Assembly (NCBI RefSeq): GCF_001194135.2 | Contig: NC_068985.1 | Location: 34,552,051-34,587,867 of the forward strand | Source of the DNA: Octopus bimaculoides | Taxonomy: Eukaryota | Length of the DNA stretch: 35,817 bases | Direction of reading: 5' to 3' | Shown here: piece after piece, positions 1 through 34,190 of the stretch | Layout: the number at the start of each line of letters is the position of its first letter | Position numbering within the stretch: position 1 is the stretch's first letter | Program-made: the position numbers and the translations under genes | The notes under the pieces: generated by a model | The model's database searches: none | Seen by the model: only the letters and a program-made list of their open reading frames with translations | Told to the model about the DNA's origin: nothing

Positions 1-228
1 TTTTGCATGATCTTAGAAATTATCTTTGTCAAAATAGAAAGCAAACAACCATGAAGTGTATCACTCTCTAACTTTGATCTATTAATGTGTGTACATGTAT
101 GTATGTGTGTGTGAGATTATTTGAGTGTACCTCATTAGTGTTTATTATGCTAGTATCAGCACAATACTAATACAATTTAAATGTCATTCATTGCCTTGTT
201 TTTAATTCTATTTTTTGATTTCTTGAAG

Positions 229-270
229 ACATGGATGGTACTTATGCCAATGTTTCACAGAAACCCAATG
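229..270 (+). CDS. 42-nt phase-1/phase-1 microexon, gene A; (D)MDGTYANVSQKPN
   Basis: Pyrimidine tract ttttttgatttcttgaAG ends at 228; GTAAGC donor at 271; open frame ac-atg-gat-ggt-act-tat-gcc-aat-gtt-tca-cag-aaa-ccc-aat-g; three paralogous copies downstream keep length, phase and Y-x-N. Confidence 0.7.
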
Positions 271-371
271 GTAAGCAATCCATTAATAAAATTACATTCA
301 TTAGAGCAAGAGATAGCAAAATCTTGGTTCATTCTTTCTTTGGGTAGTACAGGCAGTGTAAAATATGTCTT

Positions 372-598
372 TTATTTTTGTACTTGTTTCAGTGATTGGA
401 TTGCAGACGTGCTAAGGCACCACCTTGATGGGTTTAGTCCAACCAGTCCACCAAAGTATTTATTATTTTTAAGCTTTATACTCGTTTTGTTGTTGTGTTT
501 TGTCAAACTATTAAGTTCTGTGGACGTAAACAAACCAACATTGACTGTCATGTAGTGGTGGCTGAGTACAAAGACACACGCATACACACACACACACA

Positions 599-600
<2 letters not shown>
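372..600. mobile_element. Degenerate octopus-type SINE with CA/TA flank
   Basis: Collinear with the better-preserved copy at 30001-30215 (tacttgtttcagt...gcaccaccttt...ggacgtaaac). Confidence 0.7.
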
Positions 601-639
<39 letters not shown>

Positions 640-640
<1 letters not shown>

Positions 641-884
641 CAAAAAATAAGCAACACTGATTTCAAAGGTGATTGCAGTACCCACGTTTCATGCTACTCC
701 AATTTATTTAAGTAATGCGAGCATTACATTAAATGCAATATGAAGAGCAATCTTCAGCTGCAAGAAAATCTATTTTTATGTATTCTCTCTCCCACTTGGA
801 TTTGAAGTGTTGCCACATTTATAATATGTCTTTTCTACAGTAATTTTCTGCATTTTCGTACAGCTGAAGATTGCTCTTCATATT
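640..884. mobile_element. Penelope-like element remnant with inverted terminal segments, in a (TA)n tract
   Basis: Perfect 24-bp inverted repeat 737-760/861-884; hammerhead core motifs; homologous segment at 28158-28268; right part lost in the N gap 885-1081. Confidence 0.55.
673..763 (-). ncRNA. Type I hammerhead ribozyme motif
   Basis: Minus strand: TTGCAG (stem I), CTGAAGA (CUGANGA), about 60-nt stem II, GAAAC, GTGG loop, GTA (cleavage triplet), CTGCAA (stem I complement). Confidence 0.65.
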
Positions 885-1097
885 NNNNNNNNNNNNNNNN
901 NNNNNNNNNNNNNNNNNNNNNNNNNNNNNNNNNNNNNNNNNNNNNNNNNNNNNNNNNNNNNNNNNNNNNNNNNNNNNNNNNNNNNNNNNNNNNNNNNNNN
1001 NNNNNNNNNNNNNNNNNNNNNNNNNNNNNNNNNNNNNNNNNNNNNNNNNNNNNNNNNNNNNNNNNNNNNNNNNNNNNNNNNATATATATATATATAT

Positions 1098-1140
1098 AGA
1101 TGATAATGTTCCTTCAGTTTCAATCTACCAAATCCAATCA
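1098..1140 (-). mobile_element. Short 3' fragment of tRNA-derived SINE
   Basis: ccttcagtttcaatctaccaaatccaatca matches 31055-31085 of the full copy. Confidence 0.55.
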
Positions 1141-1959
1141 CATTATATTCAGTGACAGAAACAGTACAATACTCTACTAAATATTGACAGAATTATATTT
1201 AGTGTTAGGATATTCTGAAATTAAATCCAATTGAATTAAATTTTATTTCATTAGCCTCTCAATAAATACTACTTTTACATAATTATTAGCACTTTGCTTA
1301 TAGATTAGAATTTTGGAAGCCAGTTTACTGAGGAACCTTCCCAGTAAGTGTTAATTCTAAAATGGCACATTAGCCAAAATTTTTCTTTGTTTCTTCTTGT
1401 TTGAAAATGAATTTATTAGATCACACTTTTCTTTTTGACAATACATGAATGAAAGGGTGAAAAACATACACTGTACATGCACCTGTGCTGAATTTAAATA
1501 TAATTTTATTTCTAAATACATGTTTATATATATAAAACATAATGTATTTTATTTTGTTAATTACTTTCTGTACCACATCAAAATATTTAGTGCAGCCTAT
1601 CCAAACAATAATATACCCATCTTTATTTAATTTCTTGAAGTTATGCTGAAGCCAGTGGGTCCAAAAACTTAGAATTGATACCACCAAGTAAGTACAATTA
1701 ATATTGTTAGAACACAGCATGATCTTATCTTAAACAAATTATCTTAAACAAAGACGGAATCTGAACAACCATAAAGTTTATCACTCTCTAACTTTGGGCT
1801 ATTAATGTGTGTACATGCATGTATGTGTGTGCAAGAGTGTTTGAATGTATCTCATTAGTGTTTATTATGTTAGTATCATCACAATACTAATACAATTTAA
1901 ATGTTATTCATAGCCATGTTTTTAAATCTATTTGTTTTAATTTCTTAAAAATATGTAAG

Positions 1960-1992
1960 GTGCTTATATTAATGTTTCCCAGAAACCTGGCA
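1960..1992 (+). CDS. Paralogous microexon, probably shortened to 33 nt by acceptor shift; (G)AYINVSQKPG
   Basis: Ancestral acceptor position reads AA (1949-1950) and the 42-nt frame has TAA at 1956-1958, but a new AG at 1958-1959 gives an open 33-nt phase-1/phase-1 exon with GTAAGC donor at 1993. Confidence 0.45.
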
Positions 1993-2382
1993 GTAAGCAA
2001 TCCATTAATAAAATCACATTCATCAGAACAAGAGTTAGCAAAATCTTGGTTCATTCTTTCTTTGAGGAGTATAGGCAGCTTAATGTTTGTCATTTATTTT
2101 TCACTTGGTTTGATTATCATAAATACATACATAGATATGCACCTCTGTGCATGCGTGTGATGATGGATTTTAAGGTTTCATTTATTTATGAGCTGATTTC
2201 TCAATTATCAAAATATAATATCTATAATGGTGATATTTAAAAAAAAATTAATTCAGTTCAATTAAAAAGCATAGGTAACATATTGCAAGCCACACTATAA
2301 TTTGCAAAAAACTTTATCTGTGCACAGGGTTTGCATTGCCCCTCTGATGCCTTTTTTTCATTCTTCTTTTAATTTATTCAAG

Positions 2383-2424
2383 ACATGAATGGTGCATATG
2401 TTAACTTTACAAAAAAACCTGATG
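2383..2424 (+). pseudogene. Paralogous 42-nt microexon with non-canonical donor; (D)MNGAYVNFTKKPD
   Basis: Acceptor tttaatttattcaAG intact and frame open, but the donor position reads CTAAGT rather than the GTAAGT of copy 2858-2899. Confidence 0.5.
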
Positions 2425-2511
2425 CTAAGTATATATGCAATCCATTAATAAAATTACATTCATTAGAGCAAGAATGAACAAATATCTTGGTTCATTCATT
2501 CTTTGAGTAGT

Positions 2512-2650
2512 ATCATCATGACCATGATGATGATGATCATCATCATCAACATTTAATGTCTGTTTCGCATGTTGGCATGATGTAACAGTATGACAGCAAC
2601 TAGAAAGTCCAGGGGCCAAACCAGGTTCCATAGTCAATTTTGGCCTGATT
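2512..2650 (-). mobile_element. Degenerate RTE-type 3' tail
   Basis: (cat)n followed by atttaatgtctgtttcgcatgttggcatg, similar to tails at 8115-8250 and 27900-28047. Confidence 0.55.
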
Positions 2651-2857
2651 TCAAAAATGATCTCAAACATGAATAGAAAGCAAAGAATCGTAATCACATT
2701 TTTTTTCTATTAATGTATGTAGGTTTCATGTGCATGAGTGCATGTGTTTGCTTCTATTTCATTAGTATTTGTTCTGGTAGTATCAACACACTACTAGCAT
2801 ATTTTAGACATTATTTATAGCCATCCTACATATTTATCTTTTTTTGATTTCCTAAAG

Positions 2858-2899
2858 ACTTGGATGGTGCTTATGTTAATGTTTGGAAGTGTCTTGGTG
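2858..2899 (+). CDS. 42-nt phase-1/phase-1 microexon, gene A; (D)LDGAYVNVWKCLG
   Basis: Acceptor tttttttgatttcctaaAG ends at 2857; GTAAGT donor at 2900; open frame with YVNV. Confidence 0.7.
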
Positions 2900-3391
2900 G
2901 TAAGTATATAACAATCCATTAGTAAATATATAGTCATTTTCCAACCTTGATTCTGGAATCTGACCTGGTTAAAGTTAACAAAAATTTGGGTTTATTCTTT
3001 GAGTAGAATATGTTGCTTAATAACTTATGTATGCATGTATTAAAGGAAACCATCAGAATGTTAAAGTCTCATTGTGTATATTAAGCTACTTTCTGAAAGC
3101 ATTCATACTAACTTTATACTAGTGCACTTTTATTAATACTTACAATAGTCTAGTTCGAAACACAATGTATAGAACAGATTTGCAATGGTAAATGTTTCAC
3201 ACCTTGATCAGCTACTGTTTTGAGTACCCACAATCAGTCCTGTTCATGGACACCATTGACATGAAAGTAACACTGGAAAATAGTGAGCGACTTCTCTTAT
3301 TAGTAACATTATTACATTTAAATTTTGTTCCACTGCATTCTGAGCTCAATGATCTTCTAGATTGATTTTGTCTCCTAATTTTTATCCACAG

Positions 3392-3411
3392 TGAAAAATC
3401 ATTATTTCTAA
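3392..3411 (+). CDS. Candidate terminal coding exon of gene A; (V)KNHYF-stop
   Basis: Branch-like CTAAT at 3375-3379 and tttttatccacAG acceptor; the phase-1 continuation reaches TAA at 3409-3411; AT-rich putative 3' UTR follows. Confidence 0.4.
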
Positions 3412-3982
3412 TTCTGTTTATATGATTTTATTTATTTAATTATTTTTCATATGTTGTGCTTTGTATTATATTGTATATGTATCTTCTGTGTTTTATAGAA
3501 TTTGACATTTATGAACACATCAAACTAGGAAGTAAATCCATAAATTTATTTTACTTTCTTACTGTCTTTTTTTGGTTTGTTTTCTTGAGGGTAGATAGTA
3601 TCAGAATAGTTGAAGTGTGATTAAGTTGTCCTTTCATGTTGTAAGTGTTGTTATTCTTGAATTTTACTACTGTGTCTGAAACCAAACTGTTTTATTGATA
3701 CTTATCTAGCTGTACTACACCATATACTTCGGTAGTGTAGTTGTATTGATTTTTCTACTTTCATTATATTTCCTTAATGAAGATGTTATATATCAAAAAG
3801 CATGTTTCAAATATGTTCTAAAAGAGTAACTGTGCATTCAAAAATATCCTAAACACTAAACTTTCTTACTTTCTTTTTAATGTATTCTAACCTACTCTAT
3901 CCATATGCAGAATAGGAGTGTACAAAACTATGTAAACTAAAACTTAAAACTATCTAAATTTATATTTCATTGGACTATATAT

Positions 3983-3992
3983 AATAAATAAA
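3983..3992 (+). terminator. Candidate polyadenylation signal for gene A (overlapping AATAAA x2)
   Basis: aataaataaa followed by a U/GU-rich tract (tttgttggtttcttttc). AATAAA is common by chance in AT-rich DNA. Confidence 0.25.
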
Positions 3993-4879
3993 TTTGTTGG
4001 TTTCTTTTCTTCCTTTTCCTACTTATGTACAAGATTTGAACATTATCATTTCATCCATATTCAAGTTTTCCATAGATTTTTAAGAATGCTAATGGAATTA
4101 GAAGAATTAGTTTCATTAAGTTTATTCTATTCTTATCAATGGAATTTATCTTTAAAGAAAAAGAATTTTTCATTCAGTATGTATTTCTGATATTTTTCTC
4201 ACTTTACAATAGATTGAATTACATTTAGATTTTAAGTTATTATTTATTTGCTTAAATTTTTATTAAGTTTTTTACTTGTAATTAATTACTGAAATTCTTA
4301 AACAATCAGTTACTAAACAAGATGACAAAAATGCAAGAACTATATATTTGAGTTGTTTCCTGTCTTTGTTAAACTCTGCCATTTCTTTCTGAGTTTCTGA
4401 ACTAACTTACAAAATGGAAATATTCAACTATGAAGTCTTTCACCACTAATAATTCACATGTGTCTTCAACTTCTACATAAGGCTTGCATGTTCTTCAGAA
4501 ATGGAAACCTGCAAAACATCTTGAAATTAGAGCCAATAACTTAATCTTGTAAAAGGGCACCAAAACACAACACTGCCCATCATAAGAAAACAAGTTATGA
4601 TATTTTTTACTCATAAATATTTAAACTCATTGTAAATTCTAACACTCTTCAAATATGTTTCATTCATTTAAAATACTCCAACTATTCAAACTTCAGTGTC
4701 AAACAAATATGATAATAAACAACATTCATCAAAAAACATTTTCTGTCATCTCCACATCAGGATCACACAGTAATCTCTCCTGACGGTTGCTGCAAAACTA
4801 CCAAGCCAAATCACTTGAGAGAGCTGATAGTTATTGGCACAGAAAGCACATGTTCTACAGGTCAGCACTTGATAAATTA

Positions 4880-5420
4880 TTTAAAAAACCCCAAAAAACA
4901 ATGAAATTGATATGCAAGATTAGTGGACATTGCACATAGCTAAAAACGAGGTGCATATGGTCAAAAACTACATACTTGAATGTTATGTATAAATTATATC
5001 AGTTTTTTTGAATGCATTCCTCCAGAATCACTGTGGAACAAACAATGTGGTGACTGAAAAGCAAGCAGGAGGAAAGAAAAGAGTCTTAGGGTGGGAAGAA
5101 CAGCTTCTCATCAACCTTCTTCAAGACAACAAAACAGCCTTGCTAAAACTGGCTGACTGTATGATTAGATTATAAGAAGTTGTTTAATTCTGTTCCTCAC
5201 TCATGAATTAGAGAGTCACTACATTTTGCTGACCTTCCAAATGATATAGTCATTGCTATTAAGGGATTGACAGCAACATGGTCCACAAGAGCTATCAATA
5301 AGAACTGGAATTATCACTATAGTCCCTACAAAATTATATTATTAACAGGAATATTTCAGGGTGTCAGCTTATCTGTAATGCTTTTCATTATAGCTGTGAA
5401 CCTTTTGTCAGCCTTTTAAG
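4880..5420 (+). mobile_element. R4/Dong-like non-LTR retrotransposon RT fragment (pseudogenised)
   Basis: Translations LNVMYKL, EKQAGGKKRVLGWEEQLLIN, LDYKKLFNSVPHS*I and GIFQGVSLSVMLFIIAVNLLS match RT motifs (DYKKAFDSVPH, GIFQGDSLSPLLF). Confidence 0.75.
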
Positions 5421-5491
5421 TGTTACATGATAGGATCTGCAGTTGAAAGAAGGGTTATGTCACCCACACATTTTTTGTTGAGAACCTTACA

Positions 5492-5529
<38 letters not shown>

Positions 5530-5590
5530 GACTACTACCACCACCACCACCACCACCACCACCACCACCACCACCACTACTACCACTACT
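5492..5590. repeat. Compound (CTA)n(CCA)n trinucleotide microsatellite
   Basis: Directly visible. Confidence 0.97.
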
Positions 5591-5639
5591 AAATTCTTGT
5601 CAGACCACTTATACAATATGTGAAATATAAGTCCTCATT

Positions 5640-6930
5640 TCTTCTCTTCTAAACAATGACGGCTTCATTCACAGTACTCCTATGGGAAAAGCTTCTACCT
5701 TTGCCACTCACTTTGCATCCTCTCTCCACACTACATATCCTTGGCCAATCTCCTCTAAATTTTCTTCATTCCACTCCACAGGTTCTTTACCCTGCATATA
5801 CAGACTCCAAGTGCAGAAATACTGCCAGTTGCTTCAAAGTTAGTGAACTGCCAGAATTGCTAGAGCTTCAGATTTGTTTTCTCACACAGTACTCTTAATT
5901 CAGAGCCTACTGAGATCAACTTGGCCTTTCATTTTTATAGGGTTGATTAGCATTGCACCAACCTAGGATAAAAACAAGTTTGTGGCCATAGACATCACCA
6001 AAGCCTTTAACTATATCTGGTACACAAATCTCCTCTCTAAATTTCTTGCTTACAGGATCTTCTCATCTCTTGGATCAGTAGCTTCTTATCCGATCACACA
6101 CTGTGGCATGAAATCCATTCTTATGCAGATGACATGACTCCTAATACTTCCTTAATATTCCCCAACCATCCATCATCCACCCATAGTCTTGAAACTTCTA
6201 ACTAAACTTTCATTGATTCCATAAATACAAACATTGAGAGCATCTTTCTACAGGGACATGCTAACCATATTTCTTTTAACATACAAAAACTCAAGCAGCA
6301 CTCATATCAAGAAAATCCATTCCATGAAACCCAACAAAACATGAATAGAACTCAGCTATAGCCCTCACAGTTGCTTCAAATGCTGGTTTCACTATAAATG
6401 AGGGCCTCTCTTAGTAAAGCACACCTTTAACAAAACTAGGACTAGATCTTAAAGACTGGCCTCTCTCCTCAGGACCTAAAAATATTTCAGGTTCCAACAA
6501 GGTCCTAGTGATGGCCGCAATGGAGTACTCCTCCCATATCTTGGACAGTTCTGTGCTAGTCACACAGACATCTGCATCAACATCCAAAGAAGTGCCACTC
6601 AATTGAATGGTGCTTACTCACTAATAGACATGCTTCAGTATCTAGCCCATAGGTATACTGTCTTCTCTCTTTGTCTTTTCTATCATAACTAAGCATAGAG
6701 GTCATTAGGCCTCTGTCCCTTTGGTTGGTTGTATTTACAACAATGTGACACCCCTGTCCCACTTGTCTTTCCACCTCTCATCATTCTTGGTGTATCCAAC
6801 ATCCTCAGCCCACACTAACCATTTTCCCTGACTTCCAAGAACATCAGCCATCAGGAATCTTCTCTTTGCCCAAGTATTTCTGGCAGGTGTTGGCCTGCAA
6901 CAATTAAAATGGAACATTAAGAGCAAAGCT
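5640..6930 (+). mobile_element. Degraded CR1/Jockey-like LINE RT and C-terminal region
   Basis: VAIDITKAFNYIWYTNLLSKF (about 5980-6050), YADD (about 6122), MEYSSHI...IQRSA...LAHR..FSLCLFY (about 6520-6690); many indels. Clade assignment approximate. Confidence 0.7.
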
Positions 6931-8104
6931 CATCAGGTTTAGGAGGCTTATAAAGGTCATGGACAATGTGTTTGCTTCCAGACTGAACAAGAATAAAATA
7001 CATACACATATACATGCATGAATACATCCAATCATCCATTCATTTGTGTAGTTTAATTCCCCTCTTCATATTAATACCTTGAAATACTGTTTTTAAATCC
7101 AAGCATTGTTGTGTATTGTTTTCATGGGATGTTAAATTCTGAATTGATATGTGTTGTAGCTTGAACTGAATATTAGATATTAATAACAGTCAAGGACACT
7201 ATCATTTGCTTAACATCCACAGTTCATTTACTGGTCACTAATTGGGATCAAGTGTTAAGTTTTAGGCTGTGAATGTATACAAAATGTATGGAAATTATAA
7301 ATAAAAATATGGTACCTGAAAATTTGTAACAGGCTCTCTTTTTGTGTTAAAAGCTTTATGTATCAGTGAGACCTTATACTAAAACTTTAGAATTTATTGC
7401 CCTAATCAATCGAAGCTTACATTATTGTAACTTATGGTAACTTTTACATGTTTTAAATGTAATTTCTGGGATCATTCAAATTTTTTCTTCCTTATGAAGA
7501 ATTCTGTGCTTATAAGATATCAATTTGTGCACCTAGTTTTTAAGTTCCAGTCATTCTAATATTTAAGCAAGCATGATCTAATATCTAATTATTTTTCTGC
7601 AAACATGCAATTATTTTCACAAACACCAAACATCAAATAATTGTTTAAGAGATCACAATCTTATGTAAGCATCTCATGTACATTTTTATTCTTTTATTTT
7701 TTAGGTTACCAGTGAAGGTCCATGCTTTTCAGATGAACAAGAACTTAGAACTTAGTATTATTGTATTTCACACCTAGAACTAAGTGGAATCTTGTGGACA
7801 ACCCATGTCAGTCTCCTTGTCATCATTTCATAGACACTTTTGCAAACATTGCAGACTTGAGTAAATATCTAATACTACCATAACATTATAGGTCTCTATT
7901 ATATGCTGTAACTGCATTATTTTTGTATTCACAGCATTGACAAATACTTGATTTATTTTTAATCTTTGTAAATATCTATCCATGACTAAACATTTGCATC
8001 AATGAAGTAAACTCAGTTAAATTTCTGTATCCCTTTCTTCCTATGAGTCATCATCAGCTAAACATACTATGCATATTTAACAACATTGCTGTGAATATTA
8101 CCAA

Positions 8105-11100
8105 TTTTTGGAATTATCATCATCATCATCATTGTCCATGTCTGTTGTCCATTCTGGCATGGGTTTGACGGTTTGACTGGGCTGGCACACTGGAAGGCTG
8201 CACCAGGATCTTGTCTGGTTTGGCATGGTTTTCTATGGCTGGATGCCCTTCCTAACATCAACCACTCTGAGAGTGTAATGGGTGCTCTTACGTGCCACTG
8301 GTATGGATGCTATTTGTGTGACACCGGTATCTTCCACAACTGCGATTTTGCTCAGCTTGATGCGTCTTCTTCTCAAGCACAACATAATGCCAAAGGTCTT
8401 GGTCATTGCTTCCGTGAGGCCCAATGCTCAAAAGAAGCTCAGCCACCTCGCTTCTGTGAAGCCCAACACTTGAAAGGAACTCAGCCACTTTGCCTCTATG
8501 CGGGCTAAGAGTTCAACCACTTTGCCTCCATGAGGCTCAATGCTCAAGAGGAATTCAGCCACCTCACCTCTGTGAGGCCCAACACTCAAAAGGAGCTCAG
8601 CCACTTTGCCTCCATCAGGCCCAACGCTCAAAAGCTACTCAGCCTCTTTGTCTCCATGGGGCTCAATGTTCAAAGATTGATTTTTTTATGTGCCACCAGC
8701 ACATGTGCACTTGGCTTGATGGGTCCTCTTCAGAAGACTACATTGCCAAAGGTCTCAATCACTTAGTCATTGCCTCTGGGAAGTTTAAAGTTCGAAGGTC
8801 ATGCTTCACTACTTTGTCCCATGTCTTCCTAGGTCTACCTCTACCACAGGTGCCTTCCGCAGTTAGAGATCAGCACTTCTTTACACAACTGTCCACATCC
8901 ATCCGCATCACATGACCATAGCAATGCAGTTGTCTCTCTTGCACACCACATCTGATTCCTCTTATACCTAACTTTTCTCTTAAGATGCTTACACTCTGCC
9001 GAACATGCACACTGATATTGCACATTCAGCGAAGCATACTGGCTTCATTTCTTTGATGCCTACACATGTCCTTGGCTGTCATAGTCCAGGTTTCACTGCC
9101 ATGGAGCATAACTGTTTACACACAGGCATCAAATCTGCCTTTCATTCTGAGGGAGAAGCCCTTTGTTGCCAGCATGGGTAGGAGCTCTCTGAACTTTGCC
9201 CAGCCTAATCTTATTCTCACAGTTACACTCATGGAACAACCACCTCTACTATTACCTGGTCGCCTAGATACGGGAAGCTATCTAGTACCTCTGGCTTGTT
9301 CCCCTTGGCAGTTGATGGAGTCTATTTTCTGCACATGTTCAGCATTTATTATGCCTGTGCACCTTCCACATACAAAAGTTAGTTTCTCTGTTTACCTTCC
9401 TTTGATGTTGCTGCACCTTTTGTGTGTCCAAAGCTTACACTGGGCGCATCTTATGAAGTTTCTACCTCCACCTTTTCTACAGATTGAGCAGGGCCATCTA
9501 CCTGAGGGGATTTGTGATTTGTCTACCTTCCAATTTACTATGACTTTGGTTTCTGCTAGGTTAACTCTAAGACCCTTTGAGTCTAGACTTTGTTTCCATA
9601 CCTGGAACTTCTTCTCTAGTTCTGGTAGTGATTCAGTTATAAGAGCAAGGTCATCAGCATAGAGGAGTTTCCAGCGGCAGCCTGTCTTGAATTCCTCCAT
9701 TATTGCCTGGAGGAATATGATGAACAAGAGTGGGCTGAGCACCAATCCTAGGTGAACCCCTACTTGTACCCTGAATTCTTTGCTGTACTCGTTGCCTACT
9801 CTCACCTTACTGGTCATGTCCCTGTACATGGCTTGCACAGCTCTCACCAACCACTCATCTATCCCTAGTTTCTACATCCCTAGTTTAAGCACCTCAGTGG
9901 TGATTCCTGATGGGCTGGGTGGTTTTCCCTGTCTTCATATCCTTAATTGCTTTATCTACCAGGGTACTGTCAATTTGGATAGCTGGTCCCTCAGTTGGGT
10001 CAACATTTGGCAGACTCTCCTTCTCCCATNNNNNNNNNNTAGCTGGTCCCTCAGTTGGGTCAACATTTGGCAGACTCTCCTTCTCCCATTCATTCTCCAT
10101 GTTCAGCAGTCTTTCATAATGACATCTCCAAGCCTCTTTCTTTGTAGACTCATTCACAACAAGTGCACCATCATCCATGCTGACACATTTCTCTCCTATG
10201 ACATCACAATTTTCTCTCACACACTGTCTTGCAATCTGAAATACTTCAGTTTACTGGTCTTCATGGTACTGAACATAGGTAAACTTCTTCTTTTCAGTTT
10301 CTTCCTTGGCTAGATATACTTGTCTCCTAGCTTCTCTTCTGGCTATCTGATACAGTTCCCTATAATGGCCCTGCCAACAGTATTGTTCCACCACTGCGTT
10401 ACCTTGGGTCTGGAAGGGACTTTGCACCTGCTACAGATTTGTTCAGTGGCACTCAGCAAGCTCTCACAGGAATTCCCAGTTGCCCTCTATGTCACAAGTT
10501 TGTAGCTGCTCCTCCCTCTCATCAAATTTCTCAATTTGGATGTCTCTAAATCTCTGACCATATGAATGGTCCTTATGCTTCCAGATCCTTCTTTTCCAGA
10601 TTGGTCTGCTTCTTGGCATCGTTCTGGCCAGGAGTCTAAAGTCGCTAATGACTAGTCTATGATGGGGATACATTCTTCACCAGGAAGAGTCTTTGCATTT
10701 CAGAGCAACCACGCATCCCACTGTCTGGTGAGAATGAAATCTATCTGGCTAGCAGAACCACCTGATTGTAAGGTTATCAGGTGACTGGCTGGCTTCCTGA
10801 AGTTGGTATTGCAGATCAAAAGGTTATTTGCATCACAGAACTCCAATAGCCTTGTTCCCTCTTCATTTCAGGAACCAATTCCATGACCCCCATGAACACT
10901 ATGGTAGATACCGGGCTGCTGTCTGACATGCCCGTTGAAATCATCAGCCATGAAGATGAAATCATTGTCACTTGTCTTGGAGGTATCCTGCAGATGAATA
11001 TCATAAAAGTGGTCCTTCTGTTTAATTTGGTAGGTCTGCTTGTGGGGCGTAGGTAGATATAATTGTAGCTATACTATTCTGAAAGACTAGCCTGAGCTTA

Positions 11101-25619: not shown

Positions 25620-26674
25620 CTTACTGATGGTACAAATATATAAAAAAAAGGATTTAGGAGACTTTAAAGTTAGAAGATAAAAATTGGACAAGCACGTTCA
25701 AACCAACAAATGTTCAACTGTTCACAGAAACTTTTACATTATTTACATTTGACGGATATATGTCCTCATCTTGTTTGTTGTTAACACGTTTCGGCTGATA
25801 TACCTTCCACCCGAAACGTTGTGTTAACAAGAAACAAGATGAGGACAAATAGCCGTCAAATGTAAATAATGTAAATAATGTACATAATTCCTCATCTCTT
25901 AAATATAGAACTGTGTTCACAGAAATTTCCATGTTTAATAGTTGGAAGAAGGCAGTCTAGGTCAAATGCTTCTTTTGGCTGTTTGCACACGTATACTTGG
26001 CTGGTGGTTGGAAATAAGGTAAAGGATGACTTGTCTGAGAAAATTACATTCTTCCATTGCTCTAGGAACCAATGGAAGAATAGGTTTTTACTCCACTCTA
26101 AATGCTTTGCAATGTTTTTTTTTGAAAGTAGTGGATTGCAGCCCTCCCATGAAATCCAGCTTTGTGCAGCTCCCGGTAAACAGTTTTTGCAGAAACTGGG
26201 TTTTCGAGATGGTCATTAAGCTCTGAAGTAATTTTGGGAGCTGTAATTTTGTGATCCTTTCTAACAATTTGTGTAAAAGTCCAACAGACCCTATCTGAAA
26301 GTTTTGGTTTACTTCTGGAGTTTTGTTTTGATGAGGAGGTTCTTCCCTCTTTCTCAAAGGCTGTCATTACTTTCAAGACAGTACTTCTTGAAGCATCAAA
26401 CATTTTGACTGTTTTCATTACACTAAGGCCTATCATACGATCACCAACAATTTGATGTCTTTGGAAGTCCGATAGATCTGTCATTTTAATGAATTTTAAT
26501 TACCTTTTTCTGATGATATCTGAAAAGAAACAGCAATTTTAGCAAAACATTAAGTAGCACTAATAATAAATTTAAAAAAAACATATAAACAAACAAGCTT
26601 TTGATAGTTTTATAGATATTTCGAAATTATGATAGTATGATGCTAGGTGTTTCCATTATTTTGTCGAACCCCTG
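25620..26674 (-). mobile_element. Tc1-family transposon, 5' TIR plus N-terminal half of the transposase
   Basis: TIR TA|CAGGGGTTCGACAAAATAATGGAAACACC at 26674-26647; MTDLSDFQRHQIVG...GRAAI, then frameshifted WKNVIFSDKSSFTLFPT...TIKHG; interrupted at 25925; left boundary uncertain. Confidence 0.9.
25731..25913. mobile_element. Fold-back Penelope-like insertion with 12-bp TSD, inside the Tc1 copy
   Basis: Arms 25734-25794 and 25811-25874 (3 mismatches + a 3-nt bulge); tgttcacagaaa at 25719-25730 and 25914-25925. Confidence 0.75.
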
Positions 26675-27057
26675 TATGTAAAGAGTGTTAGGTGTGGCGT
26701 ACAGAAATTAAATATTGGGAAAAAAAAGGTTGCCAGAATTTTGGAAAAAAATCTTTGTCAGTTTCTTGAATTCTGTAAATGTACAAACAGAATTCTATGA
26801 ATGTACAAACAGTTTGTTCNNNNNNNNNNNNNNNNNNNNNNNNNNNNNNNNNNNNNNNNNNNNNNNNNNNNNNNNNNNNNNNNNNNNNNNNNNNNNNNNN
26901 NNNNNNNNNNNNNNNNNNNNNNNNNNNNNNNNNNNNNNNNNNNNNNNNNNNNNNNNNNNNNNNNNNNNNNNNNNNNNNNNNNNNNNNATATATATATATA
27001 TATATACATACATGCATACATACATACATATATATATGTGTGTGTGTGTTTGTGTGT

Positions 27058-30263: not shown

Positions 30264-30960
30264 TTGTTTAAAAGAGTTCCAACACTGTCTGTTTTTTATG
30301 TTTTATTTATATTCCTGCAAAACCAATGTGGGATATCGAATATGGAATATACATNNNNNNNNNNNNNNNNNNNNNNNNNNNNNNNNNNNNNNNNNNNNNN
30401 NNNNNNNNNNNNNNNNNNNNNNNNNNNNNNNNNNNNNNNNNNNNNNNNNNNNNNNNNNNNNNNNNNNNNNNNNNNNNNNNNNNNNNNNNNNNNNNNNNNN
30501 NNNNNNNNNNNNNNNNNNNNNNNNNNNNNNNNNNNNNNNNNNNNNNNNNNNNNNNNNNNNNNNNNNNNNNNNNNNNNNNNNNNNNNNNNNNNNNNNNNNN
30601 NNNNNNNNNNNNNNNNNNNNNNNNNNNNNNNNNNNNNNNNNNNNNNNNNNNNNNNNNNNNNNNNNNNNNNNNNNNNNNNNNNNNNNNNNNNNNNNNNNNN
30701 NNNNNNNNNNNNNNNNNNNNNNNNNNNNNNNNNNNNNNNNNNNNNNNNNNNNNNNNNNNNNNNNNNNNNNNNNNNNNNNNNNNNNNNNNNNNNNNNNNNN
30801 NNNNNNNNNNNNNNNNNNNNNNNNNNNNNNNATTATATATTGTATATTATATTATATATTGTATATTCCATATTCTATATCCCACATTGGTTTTGCATCA
30901 ATATAAATAAACCATAAAAAACAGACAGTGTTGGAACTCTTTTAAACAAAATAATATATT
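30255..30960. mobile_element. Element with about 100-bp inverted termini around an N gap (MITE/fold-back-like)
   Basis: 30255-30353 is the near-exact reverse complement of 30860-30960; TA-rich flanks. Confidence 0.75.
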
Positions 30961-32030: not shown

Positions 32031-32608
32031 TCAACTGCAACGAAGAACTAACCATTACAATTGGTGACAACTCCAATGTTCCATTCTATTGTTTATCAGA
32101 TTAATCTTTGCTGTTACAAATATGTGCATNNNNNNNNNNNNNNNNNNNNNNNNNNNNNNNNNNNNNNNNNNNNNNNNNNNNNNNNNNNNNNNNNNNNNNN
32201 NNNNNNNNNNNNNNNNNNNNNNNNNNNNNNNNNNNNNNNNNNNNNNNNNNNNNNNNNNNNNNNNNNNNNNNNNNNNNNNNNNNNNNNNNNNNNNNNNNNN
32301 NNNNNNNNNNNNNNNNNNNNNNNNNNNNNNNNNNNNNNNNNNNNNNNNNNNNNNNNNNNNNNNNNNNNNNNNNNNNNNNNNNNNNNNNNNNNNNNNNNNN
32401 NNNNNNNNNNNNNNNNNNNNNNNNNNNNNNNNNNNNNNNNNNNNNNNNNNNNNNNNNNNNNNNNNNNNNNNNNNNNNNNNNNNNNNNNNNNNNNNNNNNN
32501 NNNNNNNNNNNNNNNNNNNNNNNNNNNNNNNNNNNNNNNNNNNNNNNNNNNNNNNNNNNNNNNNNNNNNNNNNNNNNNNNNNNNNNNNNNNNNNNNNNNN
32601 NNNNNNNN

Positions 32609-34190
32609 GTAGGAGAGAGAATAGTGATGTAGTAGGAGAGAAATGTATTCGCATGGATGATGGTACGCTTGCTCTAAATGAGGCTGCAAAGAAAGAGGTC
32701 TGGAGAAGCCACTACGATAGATTGCTTAATAAAGAGAATGAATGGGAGAAAGAGAGTCTGTCGTATGTCGACCCAACAAAGGGACCAGTTATGCTAATTG
32801 ACACTACATTGGTAGATAAAGCAATCAAGAGTATGAAAACAGGAAAGCCCCAGGCCCATCAGGAATCACTGCAGAGATGCTCAAAATATCNNNNNNNNNN
32901 AGAAGAATGGTTAGTGAGAGCTGTGCGAGCCATGTACAGAGACGCTGTCATTAAGGTGAGGGTTGGTAACAAGTACAGTGAAGAATTTTGGGTAGAGGTA
33001 GGAGTCCACCAAAGTTCAGTCCTCAGCCCCCTCCTATTTATCATAGTCTTCCAGGCAATAACAGAGGAATTCAAGACAGGATGCCCCTGGGAGCTCCTCT
33101 ATGCTGATGACCTTGCACTAATTGCTGAGTCACTATCAGAATTAGAGGAGAAGTTTCAGGTATGGAAGCAAGGACTAGAATCGAAGGGCCTTAGAGTCAA
33201 CCTAGCTAAAACCAAAGTCCTAATAAGTAGGAAGGTAGACAAAACACAAACCCCTTCAGGTAGATGACCCTGCTCGATCTGTAGAAAAGGCGTAGGTAGA
33301 AACTCTATAAGATGTACCCAGTGCAAGCTATGGACACATAAGAGGTGCAGCAATATCGAAGGAAGGTTAACTGGGAAGATAGTTTTTGTATGTGGCAGAT
33401 GTTCAGGAGCAATAAACTGAAAATGTGCAGAAAACAACTTTGGCCACATTCCAGGGAGAAAAACTAGACTTAGTTGATAGCTTCCTCTATCTAGGTGACT
33501 AAGTTATTAGTGGGGGAGTGTGCACTGAAAGTGTAGCTGCTAGAATAAGAATAGCCTGGGCAAAGTTCAGAGAGCTCTTACCTCTGCTGGTGACAAAGGG
33601 TCTCTCACTCAGAGTAAAAGGCAGACTGTATGACGCATATGTACGAACAGCCATGCTACATGGCAGTGAAACATGGGCCGTTACTGCTGAGGACATGCGT
33701 AGGCTCACAAGGAATGAAGCCAGTATGCTCCTATGGATGTGTAATGTCAGTGTGCATACTAGACAGAGTGCAAGTACCTTGAGAGAAAAGTTGAACCTAA
33801 GAAGCATCAGTTGCGGTGTGCAAGAGATACGATTGCACTGGTACTGTCATGTGGTAAGAATGGATGAGGATAGCTGTGTGAAAAAGTGCCACACCCTAGC
33901 AGTTGAGGGAACCTGTTGAAGAGGTAGGCCCAGGAATACCTGGGATGAGGTGGTGAGGCACAACCTTTGAACATTGGGCCTCACTGAGGTAATGACTTCT
34001 GACCGAGACCTTTGGAAATATGCTGTGCGTGAGAAGACCCGGCAAGCCAAGTGAGACCTAAATCCAAGGCCTCTGCCAGGGGTGTAGCCAGCCCACTTAT
34101 GTGTACCTTCCTTCATTGGACACTAAACTCCGCTTGCGAAGACCTGTTGAGGCAAGTGAAATCGAACTAAATTCGACGACTGGTACCCAT
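32609..34190 (+). mobile_element. RTE LINE RT/C-terminal region and start of 3' UTR
   Basis: GVHQSSVLSPLLF, ELLYADDL, PHD-like Cys array 33271-33402, WAKFRELLPLL, MLHGSETW, GRPRNTW; 5' part in a gap; a few stops and frameshifts. Confidence 0.95.

Follow-up and report, generated by a model that had tools for sequence, protein, structure and literature searches.

Introduction

Grb2-family SH2 domains bind the phosphotyrosine (pY) motif pYxN, a pattern that three sites of LAT fit (PMC6669380), and in Drosophila the SH2 domain of Drk, the invertebrate homologue of Grb2, binds Sevenless (Sev) at pY-A-N-E, pY2546 (PMC11203457). The stretch analyzed here, a 35,817-nucleotide (nt) piece of Octopus bimaculoides DNA (contig NC_068985.1, positions 34,552,051 to 34,587,867; the window in what follows), contains near its start four related 42-nt blocks, each of which encodes one Tyr-x-Asn (Y-x-N) motif. 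We report these four units, the splicing pattern and coding frame of the transcript to which they belong, a frameshift within that transcript, and further copies upstream of the window. In our judgment there is a probability of roughly 55% that a protein-coding gene has its 3′ end in positions 1 to ~8100 (+ strand) and that these represent the decaying edge of an array of tyrosine-bearing modules. Such a protein would have in common with LAT, NTAL/LAT2, Shc, FRS2, Gab, and Sevenless a disordered stretch, acidic and poor in cysteine, that carries several Y-x-N motifs (Y-A-N-V and Y-V-N-V in this case) with additional Y-x-x-L-type motifs close by. It would differ from them in that no sequence homology to them was found and in being built of near-identical 35-residue tandem modules, each with an exon pair of its own.

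In the cytoplasmic tails of PECAM-1 and CEACAM1, tyrosine motifs lie on separate and very short exons, and whether the tail with its tyrosines is read in CEACAM1 depends on the frameshift caused by an alternatively spliced exon of 53 nt. The present locus likewise has a short exon of non-3n length that sets the frame: a 47-nt exon (exon B) does so for the YVNV of the exon that follows it (exon C). Unlike the CEACAM1 exon, exon B is constitutive in all contigs, so its shift looks like decay rather than regulation, and there is no homology between the two systems. Phosphorylatable tyrosines are repeated within one exon or open reading frame (ORF) in the YxxP array of p130Cas, the EPIYA segments of the bacterial effector CagA, and the Chlamydia effector Tarp, and the copy number of repeats of this kind varies by duplication and loss and scales docking capacity. 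Short repeated modules, each with a Tyr, are the shared feature; the difference is that here an exon pair and its intron were duplicated at the DNA level. The micro-exon genes (MEGs) of Schistosoma offer a parallel in their arrays of duplicated, short, symmetric exons and in fast exon evolution. In MEGs, far shorter exons encode most of a secreted protein, and skipping of exons generates variants; the exons described below measure 42 and ~63 nt, no skipping among the units was found, and nothing points to secretion. In a MEG-like array all units would be spliceable, of 3n length, and alternatively included, but two of the four units here (units 2 and 3) are broken and exon B is 47 nt long. A mutually exclusive cluster of the Dscam type does not fit either, as exon C and the first Y-x-N exon (exon A) share one RNA contig. 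The immunoreceptor tyrosine-based activation motif (ITAM) has the consensus YxxL/I-x6-8-YxxL/I, and a similar spacing is found in YIEL-x8-YANV of organism A and YLEM-x8-YANV of organism C, two of the three organisms compared below. However, the second half of the motif has V at +3 and N at +2, and the first half in organism C reads Y-L-E-M. If docking is indeed its role, the locus is a variant of a known theme, the multi-site docking tail, seen at the decaying edge of an exon array.

Results

The transcript was followed in the assembled contigs of the five sequencing runs that contain its 3′ exon (X31, X32, X15, X47, and X48). X31 and X32 are labelled RNA; the other three carry no label and were treated as RNA because their contigs are spliced. 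RNA contigs of the five runs join 270 to 1641, 1687 to 2858, and 2899 to either 4761 or 7705, with GT..AG ends. The chain leads from an upstream exon outside the window, which ends in …TGGGCCAGAATATATAGAATTGATACCACCAG, through 229-270 (exon A, unit 1), 1641-1687 (exon B), 2858-2899 (exon C, unit 4), and an optional exon at 4761-4860 (exon D) to 7705 onward (exon E), all on the + strand. Exon A is 42 nt long, in phase 1/1, and reads (D)MDGTYANVSQKPN. Its acceptor is used, as the part of the contig preceding 227 is TGGGCCAGAATATATAGAATTGATACCACC, an upstream exon of the same type as exon B (B-type), and its donor is joined to 1641 in five runs. Exon B (47 nt) is a B-type exon truncated at its 5′ end, with both of its junctions, 270>1641 and 1687>2858, found in each of the five runs. 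Exon C (42 nt) reads LDGAYVNVWKCLG in the ancestral frame, a term explained below. Exon D is a 100-nt cassette that is included in X31, X15, X47, and X48 (2899>4761 and 4860>7705) and skipped in 611-nt contigs of X32 and X48, which join 2899 directly to 7705 and in which the sequence after exon C is longer than the 100 nt of exon D. The last exon seen, exon E, was traced over 7705-8090: a loose contig end, TACCAGTGAAGGTCC…, maps to 7707, and 40/40 sampled words of the interval are present in the five runs, including the labelled RNA runs X31 and X32. Neither AATAAA nor ATTAAA occurs in 7705-8400, and 8090 is the end as sampled rather than a defined 3′ end.

Because the GT..AG junctions are reproduced in five runs, units 1 and 4 are genuine spliced exons. 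The contig that leads from the last 30 nt of exon A (241-270) via B to C is unbranched in all five, which means that in these assemblies B is preceded only by an A-type (Y-x-N) exon and C only by B. An earlier reading of this DNA, made from the letters alone (the sequence-only reading), had suggested that exon skipping might vary the number of sites, but neither a 270>2858 junction nor any other skipping among the units was found in the RNA contigs of the five runs. Of the exon set in that reading, units 1 and 4 stand, while exons B, D, and E were overlooked, as was the break of the frame by the 47-nt exon at 1641-1687. Raw RNA reads of three 2026 runs over positions 1-6000 gave an exon depth of ~0-2 and were dominated by microsatellite reads; a (TAC)n(CAC)n microsatellite at 5479-5589 draws hundreds of RNA reads from elsewhere in the transcriptome.

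The common origin of the four units is evident from both the blocks and their surroundings. A degenerate core pattern, GGTRCWTATRYHAAYBTT, has exactly 4 matches, all on the + strand (at 237, 1959, 2391, and 2866), where 0.9 would be expected by chance, and a repeat finder assigns all four 42-nt blocks to one family. The flanking intron was duplicated as well. By repeat finder and alignment, 44-379 corresponds to 1764-2101 with 83-90% identity (90% for 44-216 versus 1764-1936 and 83% for 213-379 versus 1935-2101), and stretches of 49 and 33 nt just 3′ of the block are 90-92% identical among units 1-3. The 3′ part of the intron before exon A (44-228, + strand, acceptor region ...GATTTCTTGAAG) has its copy at 1764-1950 (~90% identity). 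Since the flanks were duplicated together with the blocks, the units are tandem segmental duplicates of exon plus intron. Translated in the Y-x-N frame, they give (D)MDGTYANVSQKPN for unit 1, AYINVSQKPG for unit 2, (D)MNGAYVNFTKKPD for unit 3, and (D/N)LDGAYVNVWKCLG for unit 4. This is the only frame open in 4/4 units, and G-x-Y-x-N-[V/F] is identical in pattern across all of them. The sequence-only reading thus had the four paralogous blocks, their translations, and the invariant Y-x-N right, and the spliced contigs and duplicated flanks bear out its view of the blocks as duplicated exons of one gene. G+C content in this AT-rich region is 25-31%, and its character is that of eukaryotic DNA.

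A pyrimidine tract and a GTAAG-type donor had also been claimed for every unit. Tract, AG, and GTAAG donor are in place at unit 1 (229-270) and unit 4 (2858-2899), but alignment reveals that the acceptor of unit 2 is destroyed (AG>AA at 1949-1950), and the donor of unit 3 is CT in place of GT at 2425-2426. Unit 2 (1951-1992, + strand) also has an in-frame TAA at 1955-1957, within the ancestral 42-nt block, and what remains of it is 33 nt behind a cryptic AG (1960-1992). Related copies in organisms B and C and in one DNA contig of organism A have G at 1950 and 1956, that is, an intact AG and GAA, so unit 2 in the window is a mutated copy of something intact elsewhere. In all RNA contigs the junction 1687>2858 bypasses unit 2 and unit 3 (2383-2424, + strand, (D)MNGAYVNFTKKPD), and neither of them is spliced. 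Units 2 and 3 are dead A-type pseudo-exons. Of the four places where junction reads were to be sought, splicing is seen at 229-270 and 2858-2899, and the two between them are skipped.

The duplicated module is larger than a single Y-x-N exon. A B-type exon (…Y-A-E-A…Y-[IL]-E-[LM]-I-P-P) stands before each Y-x-N exon, and the exon upstream of exon A (B′ below) is a paralogue of exon B (…GGGCCAGAATATATAGAATTGATACCACCAG versus …GGGTCCAAAAACTTAGAATTGATACCACCAA). Across the splice junction, B′ and exon A read GPEYIELIPP/DMDGTYANVSQKPN (GPEYIELIPP/DMDGTYANV), which puts the Y-x-N of exon A in frame with the upstream exon in organism A. Organism C, a related species that is ~10% divergent, provides the evidence on coding. 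One of its RNA contigs consists of 64 nt, the equivalent of 230-270, and 30 nt (GCCTGAATATTTAGAAATGATACCAAGAGT / CATGGATGATGTTTATGCCAATGTTTCACAGAAACCCAATG / CTATGGAGGAGGAGCAATATGCTGAAGCTA), and 1/3 frames is open (PEYLEMIPRVMDDVYANVSQKPNAMEEEQYAEA) with stops in the other two. The open frame extends over three consecutive exons as PEYLEMIPR-VMDDVYANVSQKPN-AMEEEQYAEA. Since the transcript of organism C is open in no other frame than that of Y-x-N, this is the frame that codes, as the sequence-only reading held. A frame that reads A>B>C continuously (…HGWYLCQCFTETQCYAEAS…) was rejected as coding because organism C has a TGA in exon A (238 G>A) and another in B′.

The long B-type exon of organism C begins CT ATG GAG GAG GAG CAA TAT GCT GAA GCT A and has 17 nt ahead of TAT GCT GAA GC, compared with 1 nt in exon B of the window. 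The rest is colinear, so a complete B-type exon measures 63 nt, and the contig of organism C starts exactly 63 nt before exon A. A pair of 63 and 42 nt adds up to 105 nt and keeps phase 1/1, which 47+42 = 89 nt does not. From these sequences the full module is predicted to span ~63+42 nt and to encode ~35 residues with three tyrosines, namely EEEQ-Y-AEA, PE-Y-[IL]E[LM], and [TV]-Y-ANV. The single 42-nt symmetric microexon that had been proposed as the module is replaced by an exon pair of one B-type exon of ~63 nt and one A-type exon of 42 nt.

This arithmetic has consequences for the end of the protein. Entered from the frame of exon A, exon B reads VMLKPVGPKT and then TAG at 1670-1672 (+ strand, frames computed), the predicted stop in the observed isoform. 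The protein probably ends in …YANVSQKPNVMLKPVGPKT, soon after the Y-A-N-V of unit 1. Because exon B has 47 nt and 42+47 = 89, the frame shifts and the YVNV of exon C lies behind the stop in the only isoform seen. A Y-x-N in the translated frame is thus found in exon A only, which is probably the last Y-x-N exon read in frame, and within the window unit 1 alone is likely to be translated as Y-x-N. Where four coding units had been envisaged, there is probably one, with units 2 and 3 dead and unit 4 after the stop. The 47-nt length of exon B is common to organism B, given that the differences listed for 1561-1727 include no indel; among the differences listed there is no change at TAG 1670-1672 either.

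Exon B is open in one frame only, the ancestral B frame (YAEASGSKNLELIPP), which passes through exon C (N-LDGAYVNVWKCLG) and stops three codons into exon E (GYQ, then TGA at 7712-7714). Where this ancestral B/C frame ends looks like a former, or still occasionally used, C-terminus. The candidate C-termini are …SQKPNVMLKPVGPKT, …AYVNVWKCLGGYQ, and …CLGGSHSNLS. Two changes were seen in exon B of organism B. Besides 1652 C>T (A>V) there is 1666 A>T, which in the ancestral frame replaces N by Y and gives S-K-Y-L-E-L-I-P-P, so that the Y-x-E-L of the upstream module reappears. An identical 11-mer, ATTTCTTGAAG, occurs in the acceptors at 218-228 (exon A) and 1630-1640 (exon B); a deletion that joined an A-type acceptor to the interior of a B-type exon may have produced exon B as a hybrid. 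A weakly called block at 1309-1343 (+ strand; …TTGGAAGCCAGT…, with AG before and GTAAGT after AATTTTGGAAGCCAGTTTACTGAGGAACCTTCCCA) is reminiscent of exon B's 5′ half and could be one more B-type exon that has decayed. No RNA contigs cover it in three RNA runs, and its only contigs come from the DNA-like run X12.

The guess that the array continues upstream of the window is supported by three kinds of evidence. In X15 the 44-mer 227-270 has a depth of 87 compared with 20 for the path from A to B, and a second path has 50; the ratio of 44-mer to A>B depth is 1.3-3.5 in X32, X47, and X48. The second successor of exon A starts C-T-n-T, a pattern that is absent from the window and fits the long B-type start CT ATG GA…. 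Its consensus in X47 has an agreement of 0.68 and is a letter-by-letter mix of two contigs. RNA and DNA contigs were also found that are colinear with 1-251 but differ by 150 C>T and 217 G>A, as expected of a near-identical copy of the unit of intron and exon A. Together, the depth excess, the second successor, and the near-identical contigs mean that at least one more unit lies upstream of the window. In DNA of related species the unit occurs at ~3-8x single-copy depth.

Exons and introns have not diverged at the same pace. Units 1 and 2 share 89-91% of positions in the flanks (238/265) compared with 69% in the 42-nt block (29/42; Fisher p = 0.0008), and a comparison of unit 3 with unit 1 gives 90% identity for the downstream flank and 71% for the block (p = 0.018). 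The exon block has changed ~3x faster than the intron, with G, Y, and N constant. Comparison of exon A between organisms A and C reveals 4 changes, which are without exception non-synonymous (D>V, G>D, T>V) and fall within the first 13 nt, and none in Y-A-N-V-S-Q-K-P-N. This pattern fits diversification around a fixed core. Gene conversion or constraint in the intron, or the pseudo-exon status of unit 2, could also have produced the gap between the rates of exon and intron. Among the differences listed for orthologs, few substitutions can be assigned in exons B and C, as the unit is multi-copy, and they are too few for a test of the nonsynonymous-to-synonymous (dN/dS) type.

An assembly gap (885-1081) interrupts the intron between exons A and B. 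RNA contigs of the five runs splice over it, which establishes that both sides belong to one transcription unit in the order and orientation given, and because the gap is intronic it does not bear on the reading frame. Among the DNA contigs of four runs none spans it, a failure attributable to its high-copy flank. That left flank (660-884) is an intronic, ultra-high-copy repeat with 33-nt inverted arms at 737-769 and 852-884 that are 94% complementary, and DNA contigs over it reach a depth of 1e5-1e6 compared with ~10-50 for single-copy sequence. The right flank is (AT)n. The repeat probably caused the adjoining gap; it is also abundant in RNA contigs.

Discussion

We envision the locus as follows. 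In the AT-rich, transposon-rich genome of an animal, the C-terminal region of a protein would be encoded by a tandem array of ~35-residue modules, each made of a B-type exon of ~63 nt (A-M-E-E-E-Q-Y-A-E-A-…-P-E-Y-[I/L]-E-[L/M]-I-P-[P/R]) and an A-type exon of 42 nt ([D/V]-M-D-x-x-Y-x-N-V-S-Q-K-P-N), both in phase 1/1, with three tyrosines per module. The array would have grown by tandem segmental duplication of exon plus intron, and most of it would lie upstream of the window. What the window holds would be the decaying 3′ edge, with exon A as the last in-frame Y-x-N exon. Exon B would have lost 16 nt at its 5′ end, shifting the frame from A to B and bringing in the stop at TAG 1670-1672 (…YANVSQKPNVMLKPVGPKT), units 2 and 3 would have become pseudo-exons, and exons C, D, and E would still be spliced but follow the stop. 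The modules are acidic, without cysteine or a hydrophobic core, and their tyrosines stand in contexts typical of kinase substrates. Given that Grb2-family SH2 domains bind pYxN, which three LAT sites fit, and that the SH2 domain of Drk binds pY-A-N-E of Sevenless, phosphotyrosine docking is taken as the most likely role. The modules would then be disordered cytoplasmic docking sites whose copy number sets docking capacity, with pY-x-N recruiting SH2 domains of the Grb2/Drk type and pY-x-x-L recruiting other SH2 domains.

Several points weigh against this proposal. Tyrosine phosphorylation and a cytoplasmic location are purely inferential, and the upstream exons, the N-terminus, and any transmembrane segment would lie outside the window. 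No protein in a database of 5.8 billion sequences shares three 5-mers with the exon products (the B′-A and B-C-E peptides), and searching the literature for a comparable cephalopod gene returned nothing relevant. No family of receptors or adaptors can be linked to the gene on present evidence. In transmembrane adaptors of the LAT/NTAL type, multiple tyrosine motifs follow a short ectodomain, a transmembrane helix, and a juxtamembrane CxxC. The long B-type exon was directly seen only in organism C, and its presence in organism A is deduced from a mixed consensus. The gap at 885-1081 could hide another unit. A stop two to three junctions ahead of the last exon would be an unusual gene end, and in vertebrates such an early stop would invite nonsense-mediated decay. 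The ancestral B+C frame ends in …AYVNVWKCLGGYQ like a proper C-terminus, which hints at continued use. Lastly, the N-V-S and N-F-T of units 1-3 are also N-glycosylation sequons.

The appearance of the ancestral frame leads to the question of whether exon C is still translated, which we regard as unlikely though worth serious attention. The C-terminus would then be …YAEASGSKNLELIPPNLDGAYVNVWKCLGGYQ (or …GGSHSNLS with exon D), two Y-x-N sites would be working (units 1 and 4), and the sequence-only reading would come nearer the truth. Exon B would have to be entered in phase 2, from a hidden exon, for instance in the gap, or in another isoform, for instance by way of a rare alternative donor. This idea would account for exon B being open only in the ancestral frame and exon C being open in the Y-x-N frame, for a joint B+C frame that stops three codons into the last exon, a canonical place for a stop, and for 1666 A>T in organism B, which gives K-Y-L-E-L-I-P-P like the upstream module. 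However, no other predecessor of B or C assembled in the five runs, no alternative AG occurs within 40 nt upstream of 1641, the continuous A>B>C frame (HGWYLCQCFTETQ…) contains stop codons in organism C, and a run of ~30 open codons is not rare by chance. Even less can be said for the original model of four coding symmetric microexons in one cytoplasmic tail, with the number of Grb2 sites set by duplication and skipping. Although an invariant G-x-Y-x-N is common to the units and splicing is seen for units 1 and 4, every RNA contig leaves out unit 2, with its lost acceptor and TAA, and unit 3, with its CT donor. The frame is disrupted by the 47-nt exon that separates units 1 and 4, and neither 270>2858 nor another unit-skipping junction was found. 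That model is largely refuted and in our view very improbable.

The remaining explanations accept the transcript and dispute its meaning. If the repeats were extracellular or luminal, they could be disordered, acidic, glycosylated, and possibly tyrosine-sulfated segments of a secreted or surface protein in which the Asn belongs to an N-x-S/T sequon rather than to an SH2 motif. Units 1, 2, and 3 and the organism C orthologue indeed read N-V-S, N-V-S, N-F-T, and N-V-S (unit 4, with NVW, has no sequon), and the acidic residues beside Tyr (EEEQY, PEY) suit tyrosine sulfation. The ~3x faster divergence of the exon blocks (69% versus 90%, p = 0.0008) is a trait known from secreted, fast-evolving proteins. 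Shared descent and one conservative change are nevertheless enough to explain S/T at +2, Tyr is as invariant as Asn and occurs in three separate kinase-substrate-like contexts per module, and the sequences lack both Cys and the Ser/Thr/Pro-rich character of mucins, so we rate an extracellular location as improbable. A protein might not be made at all if a multi-copy repeat with splice-like ends had been exonised into a non-coding or untranslated transcript. The multi-copy state of the unit and its flanks, the better conservation of the flanks than of the exon block, the lack of a protein homologue, and the repeat-rich surroundings are in keeping with that origin. The single frame open over B′-A-B in organism C is, however, the same one that is open in all window units, the inter-species changes in B′ are synonymous or conservative (CCA/CCT, I/L, L/M) and keep Y, and precise splicing is reproduced in five runs, with matching B′-A-B joins in a contig of organism C. 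We consider this non-coding origin doubtful in the extreme, if not quite as much so as the four-microexon model.

Returning to the decaying edge of a module array, the tentative extension is that the gene encodes a lineage-restricted signalling scaffold or receptor without detectable relatives. Its tail may be an evolvable array of three-tyrosine modules (acidic Y-A-E-A, Y-x-x-L, and Grb2-type Y-x-N, with ITAM-like spacing) subject to birth and death, the latter being what the window captures, by which docking might be tuned genomically between species or alleles; we offer this as speculation with rather low odds. If the modules are docking sites, the locus would represent a signalling tail whose number of SH2 sites grows and shrinks through the duplication and decay of whole exon pairs, and intact and dead units are visible side by side in the window. 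It is also a worked case of how a remnant exon of non-3n length renders downstream coding exons untranslated while they are still spliced. An annotation based on the exon-like appearance of blocks in the DNA, without RNA, would arrive at too many sites in this case. The practical weight of these findings is modest pending the N-terminal part, the topology, and phosphorylation.

Genomic Surroundings

Other repeats surround the exons. The stretch 2491-2640 is a high-copy repeat that starts with (ATC/ATG)n and whose depth in DNA from two related species is 1e4-1e5; RNA of these species contains it, too. Its common continuation is GGTTGGATGGTTTGACAGGA…, and it belongs to a family that resembles short interspersed elements (SINEs). 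A similar-looking stretch follows exon E at ~8100-8300, although blastn did not match it. From 8.1 to 35.8 kb the window looks like repeat-rich intergenic DNA. Transposon remains lie at 9392-9850 (-), 32605-33267 (+), and 26098-26484 (-) and comprise two fragments of reverse transcriptase (RVT_1), of which one has a PHD finger, as well as one helix-turn-helix of a Tc1/mariner-type transposase. Eight more assembly gaps occur, at 10030, 12984, 18681, 26820-26987, 28048, 30355-30831, 32130-32608, and 32891, and runs of N account for several of the long entries in the ORF list, which are artefacts.

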